A DNA stretch of 64,000 bases from Epithemia pelagica (Eukaryota > Protista > Bacillariophyta). The DNA is taken from contig OX337237.1 of NCBI GenBank assembly GCA_946965045.2, positions 3,348,001 through 3,412,000 of the forward strand, in the 5' to 3' direction. A program made the position numbers and the translations under genes. Shown in pieces: positions 17,276-24,842 of this stretch; within the stretch, counting starts at the first letter, position 1, and each line of letters starts with the position of its first letter. The notes beneath the pieces are model-generated. The model was not told where the DNA came from and ran no database searches. It worked only from the letters and a program-made list of their open reading frames with translations.

Positions 17276-17449
17276 AAAAGATCTTCTTGTCATCCAGAGA
17301 AAAGATATGGCCGTGTGTCAACTCTACCTAGATGTCCTCCTGGATTTCAGTCAATTAGGCCTTTTCTAGATGATGATGATGCTCATGTCGACTTCCTCGT
17401 TCTTTCATCGTTCGATTGTAGTACTATTATACCAACCAAAGCTCCAACC

Positions 17450-19192
17450 ATGGCATTCCTAGTACTACTACCACAACGGTTCTGGTTGTGCGGCTTGCTC
17501 CTCTGGTGGTCCTTGTCGTTGCCGTCCTCCCACTGCTGGGGCGGTCCCAAGACAAGGAGGATGACGACGAAAACAATGATTCGTTCCAACAGCAGCAGCA
17601 GAAGCACCAATCCTATTTCGACTGGCCGCTTTTCCACTTCACTGTTTCTCTTGTCGAATGCGGCTGCTGCACAAAAAGAGACGTTTCGAAGCAAACCACG
17701 TCGAAACCTCCAAGTGACGGGCGACGTCTGGCTCGCCTGCTCTTCCAACAACACCGAGGGCCAACGCAGTGTCGATCAAAACCACACCAACTACACCAAG
17801 GCCGTTTACCAACTGGTCGACTACGACGACCAAGCTCTGCTGGACGACGATACCAATAGCACCAATAGCACGCAACCCGTGTGCACCTGCCTGTGGAACG
17901 ATCTCGCCAGCCAGTATTGGATGCAGTGCAGCCTGGGGGACGAGACCTGCCAACAACAAGACGACACCGACAAACAGGCTTGCACAACAACCCAAGAGTC
18001 GTTTTTGTTTTCGACACGGACAGGCAACCTAGAGCAAAAGTCGACTTGTCAAGTGTGTGCGTCCAACAGCAGTGCCAACAACGACAACAAGTATTGCACG
18101 GGAATCGAAGCGTGTACGGTCGTGGTCTTTGACGTCGACTATGGAACCCCCGAGCGGTGTGTTGTCCAGCAAACCGAACTGGGGACACCCACGCAAGTGT
18201 GCGACCAATGCACCATTTGTCGGGATGACAATGGCAAGTACGGCGTGGCCTACGACTGTTTTGGAACGTCGACGCCCAAGGGCCAATGCGACACGAGCCA
18301 CACCACGGCGGTCGTCAACAACTTTGTTCCTACCTGGGAGTATTTGCAAGGACGTTCTCGGATCGGAGGGACCTTTGGGCGTCTTTGCCAAAACCAAAAC
18401 AACGACGCAATCCTTGCGGCTCTGTATGGAGGACCTGCCGTGACGTACGACGACGACTATCAAAAGATTTGCCGCTGCAAGGATCCCACCCGAGGTATTA
18501 TCGCCTGCGATCTCTTTCGAACCGCCGACACGGGAACCTTTGATTGCTTCGGTACCGAATGCAGCGAAATTTCCGAAGTCTTTACGTTTGCCACGGCGAA
18601 CGGAGAGCTCTACGAAAAAATCACGTGCGACTCGAACCGAGACGTTTGCAGCATTGTCACCTTTTCCAGTACCACCACCTCGGAGGATGATGACGATGGA
18701 AATGCCGTGTGGACGGGCGATCCGTTGGACTGTTCGATATTTCTCATGCCGGCCGAGCATCCCATTGACGCGGTCGTGGGACACAACCGTATCCACAACC
18801 GAGGACCCACGTGTGACGATTGTCGAATTTGCCGAGACGAAGCAACGCAGGCGACGGGGATTCAATTCGACTGTTTTGGAAACGTGACGGACCATAGCTG
18901 CCAGACAAATTACGGACGAACGGTATTCAACATCCAAGGGAAGGCTCCAAAAAGCGGCGGCAGCAGCAGCAAGGTAAATAGGGCGTCGGGCGCAACGATT
19001 GGCATAGTAGTGGCGTCGTTGCTGATTGTGGTAGCTGCTGTTCTCATGGTCAAGCGGAAGAATCGAAAAAGAACCAAAAAGTCTTCCCCCGTCGAGGAGG
19101 AACCCCCCGTCGATTTCGATGTTGGTCCTGCTGCTTCTGTTGCTGAATCGGAAGAAACGCATTGGAACGAGGAGGAACCCCCCGTCAATTGA
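17450..19192 (+). CDS. Cys-rich type I membrane / cell-surface protein with two internal repeats (580 aa)
   Basis: Signal peptide, RRNLQ putative processing site, two Cys-patterned units (C.C...C...C..C....GNL/GEL..K.TC...C.IV.F...G.P..C...CD.C.ICRD...G..(Y/F)DCFG), TM IGIVVASLLIVVAAVLMV followed by KRKNRKR, acidic tail. Confidence 0.75.
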   Translation: MAFLVLLPQRFWLCGLLLWWSLSLPSSHCWGGPKTRRMTTKTMIRSNSSSRSTNPISTGRFSTSLFLLSNAAAAQKETFRSKPRRNLQVTGDVWLACSSNNTEGQRSVDQNHTNYTKAVYQLVDYDDQALLDDDTNSTNSTQPVCTCLWNDLASQYWMQCSLGDETCQQQDDTDKQACTTTQESFLFSTRTGNLEQKSTCQVCASNSSANNDNKYCTGIEACTVVVFDVDYGTPERCVVQQTELGTPTQVCDQCTICRDDNGKYGVAYDCFGTSTPKGQCDTSHTTAVVNNFVPTWEYLQGRSRIGGTFGRLCQNQNNDAILAALYGGPAVTYDDDYQKICRCKDPTRGIIACDLFRTADTGTFDCFGTECSEISEVFTFATANGELYEKITCDSNRDVCSIVTFSSTTTSEDDDDGNAVWTGDPLDCSIFLMPAEHPIDAVVGHNRIHNRGPTCDDCRICRDEATQATGIQFDCFGNVTDHSCQTNYGRTVFNIQGKAPKSGGSSSKVNRASGATIGIVVASLLIVVAAVLMVKRKNRKRTKKSSPVEEEPPVDFDVGPAASVAESEETHWNEEEPPVN

Positions 19193-20350: not shown

Positions 20351-20592
20351 CGCTCCCCCTCTCTCGCATGGCAGCCGGCAAGTGTTGTTGAGGTAGTCCA
20401 TGATCAATCTGGTCCAAGAAATCGCGACTCTAGGAATAGACAGACGCCTCCGTCGTCCAAGACAAACCAACTCTTGTGTGCAATGCGTACATATAATATG
20501 AAAGATCCATTGCGATGGATTAGTCGTGCTAGCTATTAGTTGATACCAAAAGAGAGATGAAGTCTGATGGCCAAGAGAACTTTCAATCTACT

Positions 20593-23346
20593 TTAGACCG
20601 TTGACAGGACAGAATTAGTTTTGTTGGTGGCACCAAAAAATGGGTCAGTGGCAAGTGCAACGACCGGTTCCAGGTCATGTGGTGTTGGTGTCGGTAGCGA
20701 GTCTTGGCGAGTAACGGGTCGATTTGGAATCTGATCTTCGTCGTCGCCTTTGAAAAGGTCCTTCACAAACTCGTCAAACACCAACAGTTTCTTGTATTGC
20801 TGGTAATTCGTAGGAGGGAAGTTTGCCGCTGGTGTATCTTGGAGATACGATCTCTTGATGCCCCATGTACCGATTGGGTTTCCGGTGGCATCGATTTCAT
20901 TGTTGTCACCAGCGAGGGGTCTACTGCGTAGTCGCGCACTTTCGCGAACTTTGGACACGAGGCTTGGCTGGTCCCCAAACGAAGTCCCCGAGGCGATTTG
21001 GGCTTTTACAGGAGCGCCGTTCTGCGAAAAGTCGACAAAGTAGGGGGATGAAATTCCGTTGGCATCCGGTTCGCATGCTTCGTGGGCCTCTCGACGCCAA
21101 TCCCAAAACCGTTTGATCAAGTCATCTCCCAGGCCACCGACGGCCATACGTGGAGAGCCCCAGTCTTCAATGCGATTCGCCTGGCCTTGCATAACACAAG
21201 AGTCTTCCAGAGCAATGTGGTAGTTCCAATTGTTGACCAAAAGAGTGAGGATGGGTCGGACGAGTGGTATCCCTGTGATTGTCGAAAGAATGGGTCCTCT
21301 TGGAAGATGCTGCCGAAGAAGCACCCGCGTTCGATGAGGCGCAACCGGAATAATTTGAAACTCTTCTTCAAATCCACTGACCCCGCCGTGACGAACGATA
21401 TTCGGAGGGTCAAAACGGATAAGCTTTTTTGGTCGTCCATCCTTTTCAATGGATCCCAAATGTCCCATCCCACAGTCATCCGTGAAAGCCTTGAGCTTCA
21501 ATTTTGGTAGATTTGAGTTCTTCATGCCAATACTCTCGATTGGCGGGATACTCCCGTCATGTAGAAAGAACAAGTGCGGAGAATCGAGATTGTTTTCGAC
21601 AATGTACGAGTAGTCGACCGCGTAATCCAGGACGGTGTCGATCGTGACAGTCTCCATATCCCCTTTGCGGCGTGTTGGGAGCAAGGAAGGGTCCGCTTCC
21701 AACACATTGCCCCTCCAAACATAGACCAACCCATCGTGTTCCACAACAGCGCGATTATTCCCACAGTTGGTTTTGGTCACTGACTTGAGAAAGTTGGAGC
21801 TACCCGTCCTCGCCGTGACATTCGCGTCTTCATCAACCGTGTTGAGCGTTGGAATATTGACGCATTCTCCACCCTTTCCAAACCTCCACCCGTGGTAAAA
21901 GCACACGAGTTCGCCATTTTCGACTTTTCCCATGGACAGAGGAACTGATCGATGAGGACATACATCCGCCGTCGCGACAAGCTCACCGGCCGAGTCGCGA
22001 TAGATGACAATGGGCTCTCCCCATAGCCTTGTTCCAAATGGTTTGCCATCTGATGTTTTCCGTCCCAGAACGGCATCCAGCGGCGTCTCGTAACCATCAA
22101 TCTGCCAGGTGTAGGCAACAGCGTACCAGACCTTGTCAAAGCTCGGCTTCTTCAACAGCACCTGGTTATTGCTCTGAGTCGGTGTGTACGACTTGACAAG
22201 GCCGTCGACGCGGCTGCTAATGTGCTGGGCAATCTTCCCTTGTTGAGAAACTTGATCCAGCTGGCCTTGGGCAGTCTTACTGGAACGGGAGGCTGCCAGG
22301 CAAAAGTGGACGGCACCTCCCCATCGGGAACGGTGCTCCAAAAGATCCATGTTTGCCGTCTTGTCAAAGAAGATGGAAGCCTCGTTGGTGAATGGTACAC
22401 TCACAAAGGGTTTGAGACTATCCGTCATGCAAACCATACACTCAGCACCATTGTTTCCCTGTGGGGAACAAAACTCGAAAATATCGGGCATCATGTTGCG
22501 AATAGCGTCCTCATTGACGTAAAATAGAACCGCTTCGGAGACAAACAAGGTGGGAACACCCACTTGGAGTCCTCCTTTCTCTCGTAGTGTGTCAATAATG
22601 CCTACAGGAGAGTCGCCGCCACAGTCATTCAAATCAAATGGGACAAGTTTGGGGCCTTTCCCTTCCAGATCCCAGGTAGGGTCATGCTCGTCTCGAAATT
22701 TCGCGTAGAGCTTCTCCTTGCCAGCGCAGACATCGGGCAGGTCTACTTCCATAAAGTTGATTTTGTCGTCGTGTGCGTGACGAAATCTCAAGGATCTCGT
22801 ATCGTATCCTGCACCGAACAAGACGATATTACACTCGACGGCATTTCCAGACTCATCGGTACATGCTGGACTTGTTAAAAAGTGGTCGACTGCTTTGTCA
22901 ATAAAGTCTGTTCGTGCTTGAATCCATTCGGTAAACTTGACAATGGGATCGAACAAACGACTGCCACCCTCGGTGGTAACCAGACCGCGTGTGGTCGGTG
23001 GAAGAAACTTTTGCGCTACATCATCTTGGATCATACCTCTCTGGTTCAGGAGAGCTCTCACCCAAAGAACTCGAAGGTTCTTGCTGGAATCACTAATCGG
23101 ATCCGGATCGAACGCATGAAGGAGGCCAAACGCAGCACCAGTAAAAGCATCGGAAAGGATTCCAAACATGTTTTGTGAATCGGCCTCGCTGGTCTGTCCG
23201 GGTGCTTGCTGCAGTCTACTAGAGCTCGAAGGCAGGCCCGTGGCGCTAATACGAGCCGCCAAGTGTACAGGAGCCGTAAAAGCATGCGAGCTGACGGCAA
23301 AGAAAAGACCGAGACAAATCAGAACGGATCTCTTATGAGGCATCAT
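20593..23346 (-). CDS. Plastid-targeted fusion: LCM/TcmP-type SAM-dependent carboxyl methyltransferase + Rieske [2Fe-2S] + CAO/PAO-type mononuclear-iron oxygenase domain (917 aa)
   Basis: Bipartite presequence MMPHKRSVLICLGLFFAVSSHA-FTAP. LCM motifs ARTDFID, IVLFGAGYDTR, FMEVDLP, VPFDL, PTLFVSEAVLFY. Rieske CPHRSVPLSMG...CFYHGWRF. Fe site ENNLDSPHLFFLH plus distal ALEDS..GQ. Single uninterrupted ORF. Confidence 0.9.
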   Translation of the reverse strand: MMPHKRSVLICLGLFFAVSSHAFTAPVHLAARISATGLPSSSSRLQQAPGQTSEADSQNMFGILSDAFTGAAFGLLHAFDPDPISDSSKNLRVLWVRALLNQRGMIQDDVAQKFLPPTTRGLVTTEGGSRLFDPIVKFTEWIQARTDFIDKAVDHFLTSPACTDESGNAVECNIVLFGAGYDTRSLRFRHAHDDKINFMEVDLPDVCAGKEKLYAKFRDEHDPTWDLEGKGPKLVPFDLNDCGGDSPVGIIDTLREKGGLQVGVPTLFVSEAVLFYVNEDAIRNMMPDIFEFCSPQGNNGAECMVCMTDSLKPFVSVPFTNEASIFFDKTANMDLLEHRSRWGGAVHFCLAASRSSKTAQGQLDQVSQQGKIAQHISSRVDGLVKSYTPTQSNNQVLLKKPSFDKVWYAVAYTWQIDGYETPLDAVLGRKTSDGKPFGTRLWGEPIVIYRDSAGELVATADVCPHRSVPLSMGKVENGELVCFYHGWRFGKGGECVNIPTLNTVDEDANVTARTGSSNFLKSVTKTNCGNNRAVVEHDGLVYVWRGNVLEADPSLLPTRRKGDMETVTIDTVLDYAVDYSYIVENNLDSPHLFFLHDGSIPPIESIGMKNSNLPKLKLKAFTDDCGMGHLGSIEKDGRPKKLIRFDPPNIVRHGGVSGFEEEFQIIPVAPHRTRVLLRQHLPRGPILSTITGIPLVRPILTLLVNNWNYHIALEDSCVMQGQANRIEDWGSPRMAVGGLGDDLIKRFWDWRREAHEACEPDANGISSPYFVDFSQNGAPVKAQIASGTSFGDQPSLVSKVRESARLRSRPLAGDNNEIDATGNPIGTWGIKRSYLQDTPAANFPPTNYQQYKKLLVFDEFVKDLFKGDDEDQIPNRPVTRQDSLPTPTPHDLEPVVALATDPFFGATNKTNSVLSTV

Positions 23347-23759
23347 GGCCCCTCGTTTAGCTCTGTTGGTGTCGGCAATCGAAAAAAGGTATCTTGGTGG
23401 TTGTTGTTTTGATTGGGCACGGGGCACGGTGAGTGCCGATTCTCGAAATCTTCTTGGATGCATGTTCAAGATGTCAAGAATTCGGGTTCGGTCCATCTGC
23501 TACAGATGGTATCTTGTAGAGTAGTGTACTTTTTAAAGGAGGGTCCCCCGGCGCGTAGGTCATGAATACGCGTGGAAGCTTTTGAGACACTCCGTCTCAA
23601 GTCTCAAAAGCATTTATGACTGCCATAGTATGGCATATTCCACACAGTCTCCACGCAAAGGGCTTCCACGCGTTTTGCTCTGTTACAAACATATCCTCTC
23701 CGAGAGGATATGTCCTCTCGTGCTGCTATTTCTTGTCGACGTTATAAAGCGCCGGGACC

Positions 23760-24842
23760 ATGACAACGACTCTGCAAAAGCAAGCATGGCAGTCGGGCCT
23801 TGTCCTTGTAGATGACACAGAAGAATGGAATGAAAGAGACTGGCCTCCTCTCGAGGGAGGATGGCGTATGGGTCATGCTTCGGTCGTACTGAATCATACC
23901 GATAACAACCAGGAACAAACCGTCGTCGTGTTGGGCGGATATCAAGCAGGCCAGGGCAGTGTCGATTCCATTCTTGTATTGAACTTGGCAGAATCAAACA
24001 AGCAGTGGCGAGAAGGGCCACCCATGAACAAGAAACGTTGTGGGCATGCCGCTGTTGTGTGCAAAGGAGGTGTTTATGTTGTTGGAGGAGAATACAATAA
24101 TAGCTATTCAAGTTTGAATTGCATCGAAAGAATTGATTACAATGATTTGCTGCAACCAATTTTGACTTCAAGCAGCACACATGAGAGTCATTGGACAACA
24201 TTGACATGTCGATTATCAACGGGCGGGTGTGGATGTTGTGCTATTGCGGTTCACAACCGTTACATCGTTGTAATGGGTGGCTACAACGATCGTTGTTCGT
24301 CCTCAGTCGATATTGTTGATACCAGGAATGAAACTGTCACTGCTGGACCATCCATGACTGTTCCTCGACAATTATGTGCCAGTGCGGCAATTGGTCACCG
24401 CATTTTTCTCGTTGGAGGCCAAAACGAGAGTGGCAATCTTGACTCGGTGGAGTACATTGACTTTGCAATGATTTGTGATAATGAAAAGACAAGAAAGGAA
24501 ACTGGCTCGACGTTCATTTCTTTCTCACCCACTTGGACCACTCATTCGGAGTTGGGGCTTTCCAATGCAAGCAGCTTTTGTGCAATTGTCGCCGTGGGAT
24601 CGTGTCTGGTTGTTGCCGGAGAAAAGCTTCAAACCCTCGAAGTCTTGGACACGCACCGCAACCGCGTTTGGAATCTGCCACCATTCGGACATGACCGCGA
24701 TGGCAGCATTATGGTGACTGCTGCCAATCAAGTTGCCGTTATAAGTGGCTTTGGCAATCCTTCCTGTGCAACATTAGGAATAATCGACAAGAATACATGG
24801 TGTTTTCGTCGACTCTGTGAGCAAGAGCCCAGCGGATGGTAG
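23760..24842 (+). CDS. Kelch-repeat beta-propeller protein, copy K1 (360 aa)
   Basis: Six blades with GG motifs (VVVLGGY, VYVVGGE, IVVMGGY, IFLVGGQ, LVVAGE, VAVISG) and W..GP.M..R spacing; no BTB or F-box seen. Confidence 0.9.
   Translation: MTTTLQKQAWQSGLVLVDDTEEWNERDWPPLEGGWRMGHASVVLNHTDNNQEQTVVVLGGYQAGQGSVDSILVLNLAESNKQWREGPPMNKKRCGHAAVVCKGGVYVVGGEYNNSYSSLNCIERIDYNDLLQPILTSSSTHESHWTTLTCRLSTGGCGCCAIAVHNRYIVVMGGYNDRCSSSVDIVDTRNETVTAGPSMTVPRQLCASAAIGHRIFLVGGQNESGNLDSVEYIDFAMICDNEKTRKETGSTFISFSPTWTTHSELGLSNASSFCAIVAVGSCLVVAGEKLQTLEVLDTHRNRVWNLPPFGHDRDGSIMVTAANQVAVISGFGNPSCATLGIIDKNTWCFRRLCEQEPSGW

Follow-up and report, generated by a model that had tools for sequence, protein, structure and literature searches.

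A minus-strand gene at positions 20,593 to 23,346 of a 64,000-nt stretch of Epithemia pelagica DNA (GCA_946965045.2, contig OX337237.1, positions 3,348,001 to 3,412,000; the whole stretch is called the window here) encodes a fusion of a methyltransferase with a Rieske non-heme iron oxygenase, and at present it is the strongest candidate for the enzyme that makes chlorophyll c3 (c3). As read from the sequence, its product would be a plastid bifunctional enzyme that converts the C7 methyl group into a C7 methoxycarbonyl group, a reading to which a probability of about 0.55 is given. This predicted function was supported by all computational tests but one species-level conflict. The conflict concerns the diatom Ditylum brightwellii and is the main reason for keeping confidence close to one half.

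Haptophytes, pelagophytes and some diatoms harvest blue-green light with chlorophyll c3 as a major pigment, and oceanographic and ocean-colour studies use it as a standard marker. A preliminary description of the window, made from its letters alone, had noted that no c3 synthase was identified. This was borne out by a 2024 review, which states that the enzyme turning the 7-methyl into the methoxycarbonyl group is not identified and independently predicts the same chemistry, namely that the methyl group is oxidised to the carboxyl in a CAO-like reaction and then esterified (PMC11879082). A review of June 2026 gives the biosynthesis of chlorophylls c1 and c2 only, via the 2-oxoglutarate dioxygenase CHLC (PMC13297055). 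No paper naming a c3 synthase was found in the searched literature, subscription-only papers being outside its coverage. If the assignment is correct, the gene would provide a genetic marker for c3 producers in metatranscriptomes, the chlorophyll c pathway would be complete following the CHLC discovery of 2023-2024, and antenna pigments could become open to engineering. With a single-gene candidate, the question of c3 biosynthesis becomes directly testable by genetics.

Domain architecture and active sites

The preliminary description had read a diatom bipartite plastid presequence (SSHA-FTAP), a complete LCM/TcmP-type S-adenosylmethionine (SAM) methyltransferase domain, an intact Rieske site (CPH...CFYH) and an intact non-heme iron site (ENNLDSPHLFFLH...ED) from the translation, and all four features were recovered in the present analysis. 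The invariance calls, the search profile and the structure model were based on one alignment of 41 homologs (A1). The AlphaFold2 model, with a mean predicted local distance difference test score (pLDDT) of 76.8 and a predicted template modelling score of 0.74, showed two well-folded halves, with disorder at amino acids (aa) 20-50 and beyond ~aa 770.

At the N-terminus, the hydrophobic core VLICLGLFFAV marks the second most hydrophobic 19-aa stretch of the 917-aa protein, and it is followed by the SSHA-FTAP junction. A junction of Ala, Ser or Gly before Phe, or of Ala before Trp, was also present in the orthologs from seven other lineages, and every full-length family member with a complete N-terminus has Phe or Trp after its signal peptide, an arrangement that is the plastid-import signature of these algae. 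From this type of presequence, the window enzyme is predicted to be plastid-targeted, with a putative cleavage site at the junction.

In the methyltransferase half, the Pfam domain LCM (PF04072) was matched at aa 93-286 with an E-value of 6.6e-16 and 59-62 bits, above the gathering cut-off of 22.3. The NCBIfam model TIGR00027 gave 51.7 bits, below its cut-off of 93.55, which places the protein outside that subfamily. The family profile matched human LCMT1 at an E-value of 1.4e-10, followed by Rv0731c, ML2640 and PPM1, and motif I (GxGxDTR) and the acidic residue after strand 2 aligned to GAGMDT and EVD of LCMT1, respectively. The residues G178, G180, D182, T183, R184, E200, D202 and E271 were invariant in A1. 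The domain modelled alone reached a pLDDT of 89.6, and its best fold matches were LCMT1/PPM1, TYW4 and mycobacterial TIGR00027-type proteins. When this half alone served as the sequence query against the Protein Data Bank (PDB), no match was obtained, and the family profile was needed. LCMT1/PPM1 and TYW4 methylate carboxyl groups; by analogy, the methyl acceptor of the window enzyme is predicted to be a carboxyl group.

In the oxygenase half, the Pfam domain Rieske (PF00355) was matched at aa 432-504 with an E-value of 1e-21, well above threshold. The cluster-binding motif lies at aa 463-485, and its four ligands are conserved in all non-haptophyte members, whereas the iron-site motif at aa 584-596 and the pair E714-D715 are invariant in the alignment. 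By analogy with related enzymes, D588 is likely the bridging residue, and H591, H596 and D715 likely form a 2-His-1-carboxylate iron site. The Rieske motif, the iron site and the modelled fold without a beta subunit agree with an alpha3 (VanA/phthalate-like) Rieske oxygenase. Beyond the catalytic domain, a C-terminal patch of P839, P844, P845, N847 and Y851 (FPPTNY in the window protein) was conserved across all lineages. The Foldseek search of the oxygenase half against the PDB returned DdmC (dicamba O-demethylase), GxtA/SxtT and NdmA, with template modelling scores by target of 0.6-0.7 and E-values of ~1e-15, and guaiacol O-demethylase was also among the closest solved structures. The look-alikes in the ESM Atlas were generic Rieske clusters only, with scores of at most 0.70.

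Because these closest solved structures are small-molecule oxygenases, the fusion might instead oxidise or demethylate, and O-methylate, a non-pigment plastid metabolite unrelated to c3, such as an aromatic acid, a quinone, a sterol-like compound or an osmolyte precursor. Most LCM/TIGR00027 relatives have no known substrate, and the substrate specificity of Rieske oxygenases is unpredictable at 20% identity, both of which suit this explanation. It is considered improbable, since it leaves unexplained the fusion and its restriction to c3-making lineages, including the c3-positive minority of diatoms, and we know of no candidate metabolite of that distribution.

The oxygenase had been described as CAO-like, and this description held in part. 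The Swiss-Prot fold search with aa 400-760 returned TIC55, VanA, PAO, SdmA, CAO, TsaM, DdmC and PTC52 at ~20% identity and E-values of 1e-18 to 1e-15; TIC55, PAO and CAO were in the top 15, and VanA, SdmA, TsaM and DdmC scored equally well. Almost all of the nearest proteins outside the family (30-36% identity) carry the domains PaO and VanA_C, and in the domain tree these PaO-carrying proteins formed the outgroup to a family clade with support of 100/99. The PaO domain itself (PF08417) was not detected in the isolated oxygenase half at E-values up to 10, where only a weak VanA_C match at the iron motif was seen. A C-terminal CxxC motif together with a membrane anchor is a feature of PAO, TIC55 and PTC52. 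Neither was found in the window protein; its sole CxxC is CMVC at aa 303, within the methyltransferase domain, and no hydrophobic stretch lies beyond aa 705. The family is best seen, from these comparisons, as a divergent offshoot of the PaO-type plastid/cyanobacterial Rieske oxygenases, outside every named subfamily.

The same comparisons bear on an explanation in which the enzyme acts on another plastid tetrapyrrole or pigment, be it a chlorophyll catabolite (PAO-like ring chemistry plus methylation), another c-type derivative or a carotenoid methyl group. In its favour, CAO is ranked no higher than PAO and TIC55 by the fold search, and the nearest outgroups carry the PaO domain. This explanation is nevertheless regarded as unlikely, as no other pigment of these algae is known to us that needs a methyl group to be converted into a carboxyl and then into a methyl ester. 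The 19'-acyloxyfucoxanthins need acylation, not methylation, and they are not known from the gene-carrying bolidophytes and diatoms.

For the c3 synthase reading, two precedents are available. CAO carries out the first two oxidation steps (to CH2OH and CHO) on chlorophyllide a, and so provides the precedent for C7 oxidation of a chlorophyll macrocycle, and SdmA is a Rieske enzyme that oxidises a methyl group through to the carboxyl, the oxidation depth needed for c3. On this basis, the enzyme would act on chlorophyll c2 or on the c2 precursor divinyl-protochlorophyllide. Plastid ferredoxin would reduce the [2Fe-2S] Rieske cluster, from which the electron would cross the subunit interface via D588 to the mononuclear iron (H591, H596, D715) of the neighbouring subunit, as in other alpha3 Rieske oxygenases. 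Three O2-dependent rounds would convert 7-CH3 to 7-CH2OH, 7-CHO and finally 7-COOH, and the fused LCM domain would then methylate the acid with SAM to give 7-COOCH3. The fusion would stop the polar free-acid intermediate from escaping. We infer by analogy with the domain families which substrate is used, how many oxidations occur, what donates the electrons and in which order the reactions run, as well as all other steps of this mechanism.

Family distribution and the chlorophyll c3 record

An exhaustive HMMER scan of 1.84 billion representative proteins returned 108 below an E-value of 1e-30, many of them fragments, and the word-indexed searches with the protein, the 41-sequence profile and the oxygenase half gave ~120-140 clusters. 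Most family members are environmental sequences without an organism name, and the taxon list rests on the named ones; the names do not cover clade B apart from two Thalassiosira species, nor P0082, P0087, P0389 and P0459. The fusion was found in the diatoms Ditylum brightwellii, Corethron hystrix, Thalassiosira exigua, Thalassiosira sp. AJA248-18, Proboscia alata and Pseudo-nitzschia multiseries, in the bolidophytes Triparma pacifica (formerly Bolidomonas), T. verrucosa and T. laevis, and in Chrysophaeum taylorii, Aureococcus anophagefferens, Pelagomonas calceolata, Florenciella parvula and Phaeocystis. The member from Emiliania huxleyi CCMP1516 is EMIHUDRAFT_435809. Among the named hits of the protein, profile and oxygenase-half searches, which included no direct genome search, there was no match from Phaeodactylum tricornutum or Thalassiosira pseudonana, and the same protein searches gave no named match from any brown, eustigmatophyte, chrysophyte or raphidophyte alga. 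Other NCBI/UniRef algal proteomes were clearly present in the searched database.

The tree resolved four groups, namely a pelagophyte group, a diatom and bolidophyte group, a second diatom group with Thalassiosira exigua, and a dictyochophyte and haptophyte group. The window protein fell in the diatom and bolidophyte clade as sister to Ditylum (support 99/98). The second diatom clade (P0051-P0059, including P0052 of Thalassiosira exigua, with P0070 and P0107) is ~43-46% identical to the window protein and branches apart, which suggests either two old lineages of the fusion gene in diatoms or a separate acquisition of one.

The preliminary description had proposed that the fusion be compared with producers of c3 documented by high-performance liquid chromatography (HPLC). 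In published records, c3 is present in E. huxleyi and absent in Isochrysis, Tisochrysis, T. pseudonana and P. tricornutum (PMC5322898), and it is present in Phaeocystis globosa (PMC2639444) and in Pelagomonas calceolata (bioRxiv 2026.09.29.755320). Among diatoms, it was found in Proboscia alata and Pseudo-nitzschia subcurvata but not in Fragilariopsis sp. or Thalassiosira antarctica (PMC6590143), and also in Pseudo-nitzschia spp. (PMC13540600). A table of pigment types lists c3 for Bolidomonas pacifica, Florenciellales, Rhizosolenia setigera, Nitzschia bilobata and Karenia (PMC12696874). Chlorophyll c1 occurred in 88% of 51 diatom species and was usually replaced by c3 in the remainder (PMC4584358); this presence of c3 in a minority of diatoms fits the small number of culture-derived diatom transcriptomes with the gene. 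The two pigments differ in mass, at 653 for c3 and 609 for c2 (PMC4584358). A related pigment, chlorophyll cCS-170, is made by prasinophytes, and low-light Ostreococcus and Micromonas CS-170 form 7-methoxycarbonyl-protochlorophyllide.

The proposed comparison agreed for Emiliania huxleyi, Phaeocystis, Pelagomonas, Aureococcus, Triparma/Bolidomonas, Florenciellales, Proboscia alata and the genus Pseudo-nitzschia, and for the two c1/c2-only diatoms without a named match, P. tricornutum and T. pseudonana, but one strain of Ditylum brightwellii conflicted with it. The distribution of the fusion largely tracks the c3-producing lineages.

Several observations weigh against the assignment as a c3 synthase. 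In the Plymouth strain of Ditylum brightwellii, c3 was 0 by HPLC at two irradiances (PMC2639444), and the protein from the Ditylum transcriptome (P0002) is intact in all motifs and 68% identical to the window protein. The conflict could be due to a difference between strains or cryptic species, to expression under certain conditions only, to a contaminated transcriptome, or to another function of the gene within this diatom subclade. The absence of the fusion from non-producers rests on the lack of named matches and not on genome searches, most members being environmental. With no PaO domain and ~20% identity to CAO, specificity for a tetrapyrrole is unreadable from homology. Lastly, the haptophytes are the classic c3 producers, yet their fusions lack the cluster loops and would need a partner for activity.

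The Ditylum result would also suit an enzyme of another plastid pigment, as this alga has the gene with c3 at 0 in that one study. In that case, common plastid ancestry together with patchy loss in diatoms would account for the overlap with c3; many plastid genes have been inherited in common by haptophytes, pelagophytes, dictyochophytes and diatoms, and the branching of the gene tree corresponds to these groups. For a catabolic function, however, a housekeeping enzyme would be expected in P. tricornutum and T. pseudonana, and no named match was seen there.

Haptophyte fusions and standalone Rieske proteins

In the haptophyte fusions (E. huxleyi, Phaeocystis and several environmental sequences), ~45 residues with both cluster-binding loops are cleanly deleted and the iron site is kept. 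These Rieske-less fusions include P0468, P0111, P0085 and P0087. Besides them, a large group of standalone proteins without the methyltransferase domain was found, to which P0263, P0170, P0275, P0283 and others belong, including AB1Y20_016202 of Prymnesium parvum; a similar standalone homolog of Haptolina ericina was too short for the trees. The standalone proteins are 34-44% identical to the oxygenase half of the window protein. All four of their Rieske ligands are kept and one or more iron ligands are mostly lost, the second iron-ligand His being replaced by Asn in the Prymnesium protein. The standalone group is monophyletic (support 100/98) and nested inside the fusion family, where its neighbours, at moderate support (95/65 and 90/63), are the intact fusion P0050 and the haptophyte fusions without the Rieske cluster.

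On the simplest reading of these sequences, the haptophyte enzyme would be a heteromer of a catalytic subunit, which carries the methyltransferase and the iron site, and a Rieske-only subunit. With such a heteromer, the apparent inactivity of the haptophyte proteins would cease to be an objection. The joint proposal, that the family is the missing c3 synthase and that its haptophyte form is split into catalytic and Rieske-only electron-transfer subunits, is put at even odds from the sequence data. If this holds, a homomeric Rieske oxygenase would have become an obligate heteromer, which would be unusual.

Gene model, neighbouring genes and related enzymes

The ORF (open reading frame) list of the window contains a minus-strand ORF at 20593..23496 that encodes 967 aa from its first ATG. 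Four public sequencing runs cover this part of the window; three of them are DNA-like, with depth across intergenic DNA, and one (X3) is RNA-like, an assignment made from the depth profile because the run type is not on record. The depth of X3 was ~45 over 20588-22800, ~12 up to 23387 and ~0-4 in both flanks, so that its coverage stopped short of the upstream ATG at 23496. The 917-aa start was favoured because this coverage ends between the two in-frame ATGs (23346 and 23496), and also because the signal peptide would be buried by the 50-codon extension. A single colinear X3 contig extended across 21020-22710, and therefore no intron lies in that span. The uninterrupted reading frame of 917 aa from the ATG at 23346, as first described, was thus confirmed. 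These results suggest an expressed, intron-free gene, the likely product of which is the 917-aa protein with an exposed signal peptide. The features of the gene are listed in Table 1.

Table 1. Features of the fusion gene, with window positions, strand and basis of each assignment (A1, alignment of 41 homologs)
Feature	Position	Strand	Basis
Whole coding sequence, 917 aa + stop, single exon	20593..23346	-	ORF list, translation/motifs, RNA-like coverage, colinear contig
In-frame upstream extension, 50 codons, probably untranslated leader	23347..23496	-	RNA-like coverage ends near 23387, 0 by 23532
Signal peptide, aa 1-22, SSHA then F23	23281..23346	-	Hydrophobic core VLICLGLFFAV; junction conserved; cleavage site inferred
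Transit-peptide-like linker, aa 23-55, Ser/Ala/Pro-rich	23182..23280	-	pLDDT 34-39 (aa 20-50); not conserved in A1
LCM-family SAM-dependent methyltransferase domain, aa 56-392	22171..23181	-	Pfam, family profile, structure model
Rieske [2Fe-2S] domain, ~aa 402-545	21712..22143	-	Pfam Rieske; fold matches to alpha3-type Rieske oxygenases
Rieske cluster ligands C463, H465, C482, H485	21892..21960	-	Motif CPH...CFYH, aa 463-485
Catalytic mononuclear-iron domain, ~aa 546-760	21067..21711	-	Fold matches over aa 400-760; weak VanA_C match
Iron-site motif ENNLDSPHLFFLH, aa 584-596; likely bridging D588, likely ligands H591, H596	21559..21597	-	Invariant in A1
E714-D715	21202..21207	-	Invariant in A1; D715 likely carboxylate iron ligand by analogy
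C-terminal extension, aa 761-917, mostly low-confidence	20596..21066	-	pLDDT profile; no Pfam match

An ORF of 2.75 kb with two complete catalytic domains and more than 100 homologs is far beyond chance. That the fusion is an artefact of assembly or gene calling, or a decaying gene without function, is highly improbable: although some environmental assemblies have its two halves as neighbouring but separate gene calls, the reading frame in the window is unbroken and has RNA-like coverage, full-length fusions occur in the transcriptomes and annotated genomes of many lineages, and the catalytic residues are all invariant in the alignment.

In the NCBI assemblies GCA_977009645.1 and GCA_977009775.1, the diatom ortholog was called as two or three adjacent same-strand genes (L002:452-3440 and L003:1-3263), probably due to introns or frame changes. 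Many 'Rieske-only' diatom fragments in the protein database result from such split gene calls. Rieske-only and LCM-only diatom fragments of 60-79% identity were considered as separate genes and rejected, since they are adjacent pieces of one gene produced by prokaryote-style calling.

A second copy of 916 aa (P0001), 98% identical to the window protein, was found on a separate contig; it could stem from a recent duplication or represent the other haplotype. Two sequence variants were visible among the read-derived contigs at 22681-22887.

Directly upstream of the gene lies a Kelch-repeat ORF (23760-24842, plus strand), the summed word depth of which exceeded that of the neighbouring gene by a factor of 30 to more than 100 in each of the four runs; it is therefore a member of a large multi-copy family. 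The ORF at 17315-19192 (plus strand, 625 aa) encodes a protein rich in Cys and in Asn/Thr, with what looks like a signal peptide and, at the C-terminus, a membrane helix. In the ORF list of the window, no functional link to the fusion gene was seen for either of these neighbours.

Among known systems, CHLC (chlorophyll c synthase), which was identified in 2023-2024 and makes c1 and c2 from protochlorophyllides, belongs to the same pigment branch (PMC13297055, PMC11879082). Its fold is unrelated, however, and it desaturates the C17 propionate to acrylate and leaves C7 untouched. The methyltransferase half shares the SAM-binding fold and motifs with LCMT1/PPM1 and TYW4, but at ~15-19% identity, and those enzymes act on a protein C-terminus or a tRNA base side chain and have no fused oxygenase. 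For the oxygenase half, TIC55 took ranks 1-2, PAO ranks 4 and 7, and PTC52 rank 16 in the fold search; the window protein differs from them in the lack of a PaO detection, the CxxC motif and the anchor, and in the methyltransferase fused at its N-terminal side. SdmA, a bacterial 4beta-methylsterol monooxygenase, was the best NCBIfam match and ranked 5 in the fold search, but the match scored 67 bits where the family cut-off is 600, a wide shortfall that makes the window protein a non-member; moreover, the SdmA substrate is a sterol, and its carboxyl is removed and not methylated. CAO, a plastid Rieske non-heme-iron monooxygenase oxidising the C7 methyl group of a chlorophyll-type macrocycle, resembles the window oxygenase in fold (ranks 6, 10, 14 and 15; E-values of ~1e-16 to 1e-15), in the CxH...CxxH motif and in the 2-His-1-carboxylate site. 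CAO, however, stops at the formyl group, has no methyltransferase domain and occurs in green lineages, whereas the family of the window protein is found in algae with chlorophyll c.

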